Source: Piromyces finnis finn
Taxonomy: Eukaryota > Fungi > Neocallimastigomycota
Reading direction: 5' to 3'
Assembly: GCA_002104945.1 (NCBI GenBank)
Contig: MCFH01000023.1
Coordinates: 372,001 to 436,000, forward strand
Length of the DNA stretch: 64,000 nucleotides
A model generated the notes under the pieces. It did no database searches. It had not been told where the DNA came from and worked only from the letters and a program-made list of their open reading frames with translations. Numbering within the stretch: the first letter of the stretch is position 1; every line of letters begins with the position of its first letter. A program made the position numbers and the translations under genes. Shown piece after piece: positions 45,509 through 48,195 of the stretch.

Positions 45509-45524
45509 GGTATTGAAAAATACC
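45509..45524 (-). other. Histone 3' UTR stem-loop-like element of H3 (GGTATT-TTTC-AATACC)
   Basis: 6-bp stem with 4-nt TTTC loop, 114 nt after the H3 stop on the sense strand. Confidence 0.75.
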
Positions 45525-45638
45525 ACTTACAATAGATAATAAAAGTAACTTTAAAGTATTATTATAAATAATACCACTTCTATTATTAAAATTATAATTA
45601 AAAATTTTTTCAAAATATATACATCTTCATAAAATTTC

Positions 45639-46196
45639 TTAAGATCTTTCACCACGAAGTCTTCTAGCTAATTGAATATCCTTTGGTTGAATGGTAACTC
45701 TCTTAGCGTGAATAGCAGCTAAGTTAGTATCTTCGAAAAGACCAACAAGGTAAGCTTCAGAAGCTTCTTGAAGAGCACCAATAGCAGAACTTTGGAAACG
45801 AAGATCGGTCTTGAAATCTTGAGCAATTTCACGAACCAAACGTTGGAATGGAAGCTTACGAATAAGAAGTTCAGTAGATTTTTGGTATCTACGAATTTCA
45901 CGAAGAGCGACCTAATTTATTTATTTATTTATAAATTTAAATTAAATTTTTCTTTAAATTAATATTTTCTTTTTTTTTAAATATTTTTCATTTTCAATTG
46001 TTTTTTATATTTATTATTTATTATTTTCGTTTAACAATATAAAATTTTTTAAACTTACAGTTCCTGGTCTGTAACGATGTGGCTTCTTAACTCCACCGGT
46101 AGCTGGGGCACTCTTACGAGCGGCCTTGGTAGCTAATTGCTTACGTGGAGCCTTACCACCAGTTGACTTACGAGCAGTTTGCTTAGTACGAGCCAT
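45639..46196 (-). CDS. HHT: Histone H3 (exons 46059..46196 and 45639..45911; intron 45912..46058)
   Basis: The spliced product is the 136-aa [26 protein letters not shown]|[17 protein letters not shown]. Confidence 0.99.
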
Positions 46197-47644
46197 GATA
46201 AATTCTTTTTACTGTTATTTTTTAATAAAAAAATACTTTAAGGATACTTTTCAGTATATTTTTAAAAAAATTATATAAAAATTTTTTTATAAAAAAAGCT
46301 TAAATTTTTAAAAATTTTTGCAGGAATTCATCATCTTTTATAGTAGTGGTGGACAACAACATAATATTTATTTTAGCCAATATATTTTCTCTTTCAAATT
46401 TGAACCAATAAATTTTTTCGTTTCAACAATTAAAATTTTTTTAGCGTTGTACCTTTTTTTTTTTTTTGAGAGTTATACAGAGTTTAATAAACTAAAAAGC
46501 ATAATAATAAAATAATTAATTAAAAGTTAAATTTATAATTAAAATCAAACATAAATATTTATAGATAATATACTAATATACTGAAGAATAGTTTATCCTG
46601 TTATAATGAATAATATATGTTAAAACTTATAAATCACATAAAATAAATCTTAAAAAAAATATTGTACAAAAATTATTGGAAAAAAAAATTTTTTTATTGT
46701 CCTTTTGTTAAATTAAGGCTATTTTTTTTTTTGGTAATTTAAATAAAAAACAAAATGTGAAAATATAACATAAAATATAAAAGATAATAAAGTGATAATA
46801 AAAGATAATATCAAAGGAAAATGCAAAGGATAAATAAAGATATTATCAATCATTAAAGATTATTATAAATAATTTATTACATATGTAATACAATATAACT
46901 AATTTAATATTATGATGTTATATATTTGCTTATTGATTTTTTTTCCTTGCTTTAACTCTACTGACTTTTTTTTTTTTAACCTAGAACAATTAGCCTATCA
47001 TTTGGACTCTTCATGTGATAGATCACATTGATAATGATTTACATCAAAGTTTGTTGTCCACCACTAAAAAGGCTGAAAAGCAAATTCATTTCTATTCCAC
47101 TTTTTTTTTTCACTTTTCCATTATTTAATTACTTTAAAACTCAACTACCTTCTTATCAACATTTTCATTTTCATTTTTTTATTATATTTTATTTTATATT
47201 AAAATATACAGTTCATTCATAATATATTATGAATATATTATAAAAATTTATTTTATATATTGTGAATATATATTAAATATTATTGTAATATATACTTAAT
47301 TTATTTTTAAAACCTAGGCCATAGAAATTAAACCATTTTTATTTTATTAAAAATAAAGTAAATTAAATTAAGGACAATAAAAATTTTTTATAAAAAAAAT
47401 TAATTTGAATTGAAAATAATCATTTACATATATTAGAATTGATTGGAATGCATATTATTCTTTATGAATTCATATAATTTATACTTTTATTATTAAATTT
47501 TTTTGTATATAAGGCAGTTTTTTTTCCCTAAATTTTTTTTCTTCAATCTTTAATCTTGTTTTATATATTTTTATATAAAATAAATTTTTAAAACGAAAAT
47601 TAAATCCTTTTAATTTATTTTAAAAAGAAAAAAGAAAGAACAAA
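46197..47644. promoter_or_regulatory. Bidirectional H3/H4 promoter with mirrored motifs
   Basis: Divergent genes. CCAAT at 46377..46381 and ATTGG at 47442..47446. A 14-bp motif TTTTTATTGTCCTT at 46691..46704 and its reverse complement at 47370..47383. Confidence 0.6.
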
Positions 47645-48053
47645 ATGACTGGTCGTGGAAAAGGTGGAAAAGGTTTAGGAAAAGGTGGAGCTAAGCGTCA
47701 CAGAAAGATTCTTCGTGATAACATTCAAGTAAATATATGAAATAATTATAGTATTTAAATATAAAGATAAATAAACAGGATGTAATTATTAATACATAAT
47801 TATAAAATTTAATTAAAATTAATAGGGTATTACTAAGCCAGCTATTCGTCGTCTTGCCCGTCGTGGTGGTGTCAAGCGTATTTCTGGTCTTATTTACGAA
47901 GAAACTCGTGGTGTTCTTAAGGTCTTCCTCGAAAATGTTATTCGTGATGCCGTTACCTACACTGAACATGCTAAGAGAAAGACTGTTACTTCTTTAGATG
48001 TTGTCTACGCTCTTAAGCGTCAAGGTCGTACTCTTTACGGTTTCGGTGGTTAA
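47645..48053 (+). CDS. HHF: Histone H4 (exons 47645..47728 and 47826..48053; intron 47729..47825)
   Basis: The spliced product is the 103-aa [28 protein letters not shown]|[17 protein letters not shown]. Confidence 0.99.
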
Positions 48054-48179
48054 GTTTGCTAACTGCTCAAAGACTATATTGTATAATACAAAAATATATA
48101 AAATATTATTTTTTTAAAGAAAATATCGTCTAAAATTTCTTTAAAAAGCCAACATTTTTTTTAAAATGTTTATATAAAC

Positions 48180-48195
48180 GGTATTTTTAAATACC
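48180..48195 (+). other. Histone 3' UTR stem-loop-like element of H4 (GGTATT-TTTA-AATACC)
   Basis: 6-bp stem with 4-nt TTTA loop, 126 nt after the H4 stop. The stem is identical to the H3 element. Confidence 0.75.

Follow-up and report, generated by a model that had tools for sequence, protein, structure and literature searches.

According to the textbook view, histone mRNAs of fungi are polyadenylated and lack the animal stem-loop. Does this view hold for the anaerobic gut fungi? The question is raised by a 64,000-nucleotide stretch of DNA from Piromyces finnis finn (Neocallimastigomycota; assembly GCA_002104945.1, contig MCFH01000023.1, positions 372,001 to 436,000 of the forward strand), hereafter called the window, in which a histone H3 gene and a histone H4 gene are each followed, in the 3' untranslated region (UTR), by a hairpin with a 6-base-pair (bp) stem and a 4-nucleotide (nt) loop. 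Judging from its sequence and occurrence, this hairpin is probably a true RNA element, conserved and specific to histone genes and homologous to the type of stem-loop that is read by SLBP (stem-loop-binding protein). The two genes and their hairpins occupy the following positions in the window:

45509..45524, minus strand: H3 3'-UTR stem-loop GGUAUU-UUUC-AAUACC, 114 nt past the stop codon (45641..45639)
48180..48195, plus strand: H4 3'-UTR stem-loop GGUAUU-UUUA-AAUACC, 126 nt past the stop codon (48051..48053)
45639..46196, minus strand: histone H3 gene, 136 amino acids (aa); exon 1 46196-46059, intron 46058-45912, exon 2 with stop codon 45911-45639
47645..48053, plus strand: histone H4 gene, 103 aa; exon 1 47645-47728, intron 47729-47825, exon 2 with stop codon 47826-48053
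46197..47644, no strand: divergent promoter region of 1.45 kilobases (kb), common to H3 and H4

A first-pass annotation, made from the letters alone, had already described these hairpins, and its sequences, strands, coordinates, distances of 114 and 126 nt from the stop codons and AATAAA sites are all exact. It had also placed the hairpins on intron-containing genes; each of the two genes has one GT..AG intron, and the translations are the canonical proteins. The exact H3 protein is found by sequence look-up in Piromyces and Neocallimastix assemblies as well. The two 3' UTRs are unrelated outside the hairpin, as the annotation had it, except for one common 11-mer, AAGTGTTTAAA, which is located 69 nt (H4) and 80 nt (H3) beyond the hairpins and is not conserved in other species.

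The window has a GC content of 21.7% and contains 168 perfect 6-bp/4-nt hairpins per strand, but those behind H3 and H4 are the only pair with a stem of the GG..CC type. In shuffled sequences, GG..CC hairpins with a TTTN loop were found at a mean of 0.01, and the pattern GGTATTNNNNAATACC, with 12 specified bases, is present twice in the window against 0.01 expected. Since the observed counts so far exceed those in the shuffles, chance is excluded as an explanation for the two hairpins. Both are also present in the minimum-free-energy fold.

Conservation in gut-fungus histone loci

The DNA used for comparison comprised the window and eight loci of 20 kb each in assemblies of Piromyces and Neocallimastix, together about 164 kb; the loci were located by looking up the exact sequences of the H4 and H3 proteins. 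The other assemblies are presumably those of Piromyces sp. E2 and of Neocallimastix species. One locus retrieved (L018/L150; GCA_002104945.1, contig MCFH01000023.1) is a 100% match to the window with the same geometry of H3 and H4. In the AT-rich loci (13-25% GC), exactly one GG..CC hairpin follows each H3 and each H4 gene, always on the sense strand and at 101-219 nt from the stop codon. All 13 GG..CC hairpins are found behind H3 or H4. The first-pass annotation had proposed a comparison with non-histone 3' UTRs, and not a single GG..CC hairpin was detected outside the H3 and H4 3' UTRs in the entire 164 kb.

The stems read either GGTATT/AATACC or GGCATT/AATGCC, which represents a compensatory change from U-A to C-G at one pair. 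The loops are TTTC, TTTA, TATC, TATT or TATA, with T at positions 1 and 3 of the mRNA strand in every case. Thus, the basal two G-C pairs, the U-A pair that closes the loop, and U1 and U3 in the loop are invariant in 13 of 13 hairpins. Alignment A1, of 11 hairpins together with their flanks (30-45 nt), has 14 invariant columns, of which 13 correspond to the hairpin and one adjoining 5' A, while the identity in the flanks averages 62%; all 66 pair cells of the 11 sequences are standard pairs. On the 5' side, AA is present at positions -4/-3 in 12 of the 13 cases, and A immediately follows the stem at +1, again in 12 of 13, with the CC of the ACC motif missing. The hairpin is, therefore, supported as a conserved, histone-specific RNA element on the sense strand. 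The pattern of conservation shows purifying selection on the features that SLBP is known to contact in animals, i.e., the basal two G-C pairs, a stem of 6 bp with U-A as its closing pair, a loop of 4 nt with U1 and U3, an A-rich 5' flank and an A directly 3' of the stem.

With the polyadenylated histone mRNAs of Dikarya and Mucoromycota, the gut-fungus genes share the introns and the presence of AAUAAA-type signals downstream. However, no GG..CC stem-loop was found behind H3, H4, H2A or H2B in nine loci (29-47% GC) that are taken as Mucoromycota from the names of their H4 matches and our own reading of them, and none was found in two loci of 46% GC that encode the identical H3 protein. A search with exon 2 of H4 yielded matches dominated by universal H4 sequences.

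Other potential hairpins are located close to the stem-loops. In the H3 3' UTR of one Neocallimastix locus (L014, positions 4670-4700), the stem-loop is preceded, at about 10 nt, by another perfect palindrome, AGCACT-TTAA-AGTGCT, whose counterpart in the window is degenerate. About 20 nt past the H4 stem-loop of the window (48216-48232, plus strand), GTCTTT-TAC-AAAGAC could form a second small hairpin, and the Neocallimastix H4 loci have TCTTTT...AAAAGA at the matching position.

Likeness to the stem-loops of other eukaryotes

The stem-loop of metazoan histone mRNAs (Rfam family RF00032) is read by SLBP, and the RNA is cleaved by the U7 small nuclear ribonucleoprotein. The gut-fungus hairpin shares with it the 6-bp stem, the 4-nt loop, the GG..CC base, the U-A closing pair, U1 and U3 in the loop, the A-rich 5' flank, the A directly 3' of the stem, and the location on the sense strand of 3' UTRs of core histone genes. 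An independent view of the resemblance was obtained when metagenomes were scanned with the gut-fungus motif and minimal flanks. At least 120 loci were found and, among those listed, four have the motif directly 3' of a histone coding sequence on the sense strand. One of them (L100) is a transcript of a gut-fungus H3 gene, which is discussed below. Another (L101) is an animal H3.2/H2A cluster, with GGCAUU-UUUC-AAUGCC-ACC about 20 nt past the H3 stop codon. The remaining two are from marine eukaryotes, one with a GC content of 68% and the motif behind H2A (L118), the other with 36% GC and the motif behind H2B (L128). In sister loci of the latter two, H2A, H2B and H3 are each followed by GGU(A/G)UU-U(U/A)U(C/U)-AA(U/C)ACC at 27-86 nt past the stop codon. 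As a side observation, the animal cluster (L101, 860-973, plus strand) encodes H2A and H3.2 of the animal type, each with GGCAUU-UUUC-AAUGCC, and a U5 small nuclear RNA gene (80 bits) is located between the two genes.

Hence, the 16-nt core found in the fungi is, letter for letter, that of stem-loops located 20-86 nt behind H2A, H2B and H3 in an animal and two marine eukaryotes. Compared with the marine eukaryotes (L118, L151-L158), the core is identical or differs in one pair, and the 5' context is AA-N-C; their stem-loops have an ACC or ACA 3' flank and stand behind H2A, H2B and H3, whereas the distance from the stop codon is larger in the gut fungi, for which the comparison covers H3 and H4. 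In the gut-fungus stems, position 4 is A, as opposed to the pyrimidine 5' strand (GGYYYU) and purine 3' strand of the RF00032-type consensus. Stems of the form GGYAUU or GGUGUU are also in use behind histone genes of the animal cluster and the two marine eukaryotes, and a purine at this position and a UAUC loop are apparently normal outside the vertebrates.

To compare the hairpins with stem-loops not derived from the fungal motif, a covariance model (R1) was trained on 65 stem-loops in unrelated eukaryotic histone repeats that contaminate metagenome-assembled genomes (MAGs) of prokaryotes. These repeats were found via H2A protein homology, perfect GG..CC stems with U1 and U3 were picked by the author, and the searches were run with filters off. 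Over the 64-kb window, the H4 hairpin obtains the highest R1 score (20.2 bits, E 8e-4), and in 99.5 kb of related loci the top five matches are all histone hairpins (19.8, 16.3, 16.0, 14.8 and 12.6 bits). The fungal 5' flanks, AAGC, AAAC, AATC and AAGT, together with the 3' A, fit the AA-N-C / A consensus of the 65 control stem-loops. The contaminating loci themselves (L159-L223) are contained in 'bacterial/archaeal' MAGs of GTDB, encode eukaryotic H2A, many of them in tandem histone repeats with canonical stem-loops, and none of the 65 is AT-rich fungal. Several of the MAGs are labeled Poribacteria. Poribacteria are a sponge-associated group.

For animals, the first-pass annotation had described the histone genes with a stem-loop as intronless. 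Green-algal histone mRNAs have been reported to end in stem-loops, and green algae, mosses, ferns and a cycad are known to have stem-loop-terminated as well as dual-form histone mRNAs. The H3 genes of Volvox reportedly combine an intron with a 3' palindrome, so that the premise of intronless genes needs to be corrected.

The annotation had further named animals and several protists as the known bearers of the stem-loop, and this premise needs correction as well. SLBP orthologues positive for PF15247 and stem-loop motifs were described in Cryptomycota, some Chytridiomycota and Blastocladiomycota in a bioRxiv preprint of 16 October 2026 (10.64898/2026.10.14.759114). In those fungi, the stem-loops often co-occur with poly(A) signals, polyadenylated transcripts containing the stem-loop are present, and the U7 machinery is sparse (10.64898/2026.10.14.759114). 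Because of that report, the general claim of histone stem-loops in fungi is not new. Its main text mentions neither the Neocallimastigomycota nor their genera, and what is new here is the lineage itself, together with the quality of the evidence that supports it. The gut-fungus loci share with the 'SLBP-SL-PAS' state of early-diverging fungi (10.64898/2026.10.14.759114) a stem-loop in the histone 3' UTR that is followed by a poly(A) signal. However, the detection rule in the preprint is permissive, as any 6-bp/4-nt hairpin within 300 nt is accepted with one mismatch, and when applied here it yielded about nine candidates in a single 330-nt histone flank without a real stem-loop. In contrast, the evidence in the gut fungi is sequence-specific, conserved and exclusive to histone genes.

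Poly(A) signals and transcript ends

The sequences downstream of the two stem-loops contain the following features:

45491..45496, minus strand: AAUAAA, candidate poly(A) signal, 12 nt past the H3 stem-loop
48203..48208, plus strand: AAUAAA, candidate poly(A) signal, 7 nt past the H4 stem-loop
45470..45483, minus strand: block CUUGAAAAAGAGAA, 25-38 nt past the H3 stem-loop, from alignment A1 and the downstream sequences
48265..48275, plus strand: G/U-containing 11-mer AAGUGUUUAAA, 69 nt past the H4 stem-loop
45418..45428, minus strand: 11-mer AAGUGUUUAAA, 80 nt past the H3 stem-loop

Of 11 cases, 8 have an AATAAA wholly inside the 25 nt 3' of the hairpin, and the background at random positions in the same DNA is 0.118 (binomial P about 4e-6, the orthologous loci not being fully independent). 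Further downstream, blocks are kept within each gene class, for example CTTGAAAAAGAGAA after the paired H3 genes and AAAATTTTCGTCYTAC after H4. The block CUUGAAAAAGAGAA is conserved in the H4-paired H3 genes of Piromyces and Neocallimastix and could be part of a poly(A) site or a purine tract resembling the histone downstream element (HDE). G/U-containing tracts are located at +70 to +100 past the hairpins. Among these, the 11-mer AAGUGUUUAAA is a possible downstream element of the poly(A) site, and at its position other species have merely loosely similar GUGUUU-type tracts. Taken together, the AATAAA motifs, the conserved blocks and the G/U-containing tracts resemble an ordinary poly(A) site with its downstream element.

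The hairpins of H3 and H4 are transcribed as part of the 3' UTRs. The contig L100, from a metagenome collection, is 99.7% identical to a Neocallimastix H3 locus (L017/L147), and the 148-nt GT..AG intron is precisely absent from it; because of this precise removal, the contig must be derived from RNA. The hairpin is included in it, and the sequence goes on for at least 77 nt past the stem; at its end, no tail can be seen. Read on the H3 sense strand, the initial 518 nt of the contig (positions 761-1278) contain another open reading frame (ORF) and are not colinear with the genomic locus; therefore, the assembly is probably chimeric in the part that precedes the H3 5' UTR. Two spurious 3'-UTR ORFs were also used as queries for transcript contigs, and neither is on record.

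Since the hairpin is located 101-219 nt into the UTR and is followed by AAUAAA after 2-36 nt, we infer an internal stem-loop with polyadenylation downstream. Many transcripts are probably cleaved and polyadenylated tens of nt downstream of the stem-loop, which would thereby stay internal. The evidence favors a stem-loop inside a polyadenylated mRNA, at least as one isoform. An isoform that terminates at the stem-loop and lacks poly(A) may exist as well, as many public libraries are poly(A)-selected. The suggestion in the first-pass annotation that the mRNAs may have dual ends, at the stem-loop and at a poly(A) site, gains support from the AATAAA enrichment and from the read-through in L100. 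Its broader proposal, a retained SLBP/stem-loop pathway for 3'-end formation, is supported only in part: the cis element is conserved, and the hints about the transcripts favor a stem-loop within a spliced, polyadenylated mRNA.

How might such an element work? An SLBP-family protein may bind the hairpin, and this binding could couple the fate of the histone mRNA, i.e., the choice of its 3' end, its stability or its translation, to DNA replication. Tentatively, the gut fungi may represent an evolutionary intermediate, in which an intact stem-loop of the SLBP type has shifted to a place deep in the 3' UTR, and the spliced histone mRNAs end at an ordinary poly(A) site just downstream of it. The reading of the stem-loop, be it for replication coupling, stability or translation, would then be uncoupled from U7-dependent cleavage, and the reader would possibly not be a canonical SLBP. 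This specific scenario is a possibility rather than an expectation.

Alternative readings, significance and neighboring genes

Several observations weigh against homology with the SLBP-type stem-loop or set the element apart from its metazoan counterpart. In comparison with the latter, the gut-fungus stem is A/U-rich, has a purine at position 4 and lacks the ACC(C)A consensus (ACCCA in metazoans) in the 3' flank. The element is located 101-219 nt from the stop codon, as against tens of nt in metazoans and about 20-86 nt in the control stem-loops, on intron-containing genes and with AAUAAA directly after it. Cleavage right after the stem is not obligatory, since L100 reads through the hairpin. 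The first-pass annotation had suggested a search with RF00032. This model did match the H4 hairpin, at 18.9 bits, which is below its gathering threshold of 34; the H3 hairpin was not reported, and the other gut-fungus hairpins were not listed. Bona fide control stem-loops also remain under 34 bits with this model, scoring only 28.8-30.8 bits, and the threshold is thus conservative for so short a motif. R1 scores the H3 hairpin of the window at only 10.1 bits and fails to pick up the hairpins whose loop reads UAUA. Furthermore, the hairpin is known in gut fungi for H3 and H4 only, as no H2A or H2B gene is located within 10 kb of the eight H3 loci or in the window.

The last of these points concerns the protein. 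The RNA-binding domain of human SLBP, checked against PDB entry 4L8R, was used as a seed for searches, and its matches were used as further seeds. With the human domain, only vertebrate-like fragments were found. Among the best 120-150 of 2148 family representatives, which are animal-like or unidentified, there is no SLBP homologue from gut fungi, and no single fungal proteome was searched; none of the best 150 has an AT-rich-fungal look. A search of the ESM Atlas returned chordate clusters, a scan of prokaryotic genomes for contaminating SLBP returned none, and regular-expression scans of all fetched DNA did not reveal an SLBP domain. A profile of 19 diverse SLBP domains, run against short proteins, retrieved two fragments that looked AT-rich, and these candidates were rejected, as their contigs have 26% and 40% GC and are apparently non-fungal. 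In Logan contigs from runs ERR3304xxx (L224-L229, 26% GC), there is an exon-like ORF whose resemblance to the SLBP RNA-binding domain is confined to the C-terminal half (HPRTPNKF..SRRSWD), the N-terminal half being degenerate.

The absence of a gut-fungus SLBP among these matches would be explained if SLBP had been lost and a lineage-specific 3'-UTR hairpin, merely resembling the histone stem-loop, were read by another factor, for example in a role as upstream enhancer of the adjacent poly(A) site or in mRNA stability. The scores below threshold with models trained on animals, the unusual distance from the stop codon, the AAUAAA immediately after the hairpin and the one transcript that reads through it would fit such an element, and stem-loop-like hairpins have been noted in fungal groups without SLBP (10.64898/2026.10.14.759114). 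However, every class of nucleotide that is contacted by SLBP is invariant in the gut fungi, and the 16-mer is identical to H2A, H2B and H3 stem-loops in unrelated eukaryotes; because of this exact identity, convergence without the same reader is unlikely. Furthermore, the absence of SLBP is not demonstrated. A mere resemblance is, therefore, considered rather unlikely, and an SLBP-type stem-loop remains the preferred explanation.

As the core of the stem-loop is intact, the entire animal-type pathway could also operate, with U7-dependent cleavage 4-5 nt past the stem, H3 and H4 mRNAs that are mostly non-polyadenylated, and polyadenylated read-through as a minor product. Poly(A)-selected public libraries would under-represent such stem-loop ends, and the purine-rich GAAAAAGAGAA, conserved 25-38 nt past the H3 hairpin in Piromyces and Neocallimastix, resembles the HDE core. 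However, purine-rich tracts are common in DNA of 22% GC, and an ordinary poly(A) site is suggested by the AAUAAA enrichment and by the blocks conserved downstream. L100 extends at least 77 nt past the stem. No Rfam family, U7 included, reaches its gathering score in the window, no U7 match was found at E <= 10 in the related loci searched, and U7-associated factors are largely absent from fungi (10.64898/2026.10.14.759114). Full conservation of the animal-type pathway thus appears quite unlikely.

Finally, the stem is a perfect palindrome at the DNA level, and a dimeric DNA-binding protein would likewise select for symmetric compensatory changes, but a role as a binding site for such a factor or as an element for transcription pausing or termination, with no function in RNA, is highly improbable and was rejected along with chance, which the shuffle counts exclude: the loop is not the same on the two strands, U1 and U3 being on the mRNA strand throughout and, in the eight hairpins with a non-palindromic loop (UUUC, UUUA, UAUC or UAUU), only there; the element lies within the spliced transcript L100; it equals known RNA stem-loops of other eukaryotes; and its orientation is fixed although it stands at distances from the stop codon that differ by more than 100 nt.

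An SLBP-type stem-loop in these fungi is of interest beyond the locus itself. For zoosporic fungi, the 2026 preprint begins to overturn the textbook view, and the gut-fungus loci offer a much cleaner case. As the Neocallimastigomycota can be cultivated, they are useful for studying which role a stem-loop has when it is not the 3' end of the mRNA, and how fungi switched from stem-loop to poly(A) ends. In addition, the motif is a precise marker for the annotation of replication-dependent histone genes in the AT-rich genomes of gut fungi.

The window contains other genes of note. A reverse-transcriptase domain (RVT_1, about 123 bits) is encoded by each of two intact ORFs of about 1,508 aa (49497-54026, plus strand, and 9134-13657, minus strand), which have the appearance of near-full-length copies of a retrotransposon without long terminal repeats. 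One of them is located 1.3 kb downstream of the H4 hairpin. At 56124-57953 on the minus strand, a CotH kinase-like protein is encoded with two C-terminal CBM10 (fungal dockerin) modules, which are a hallmark of the cellulosome proteins of anaerobic gut fungi.

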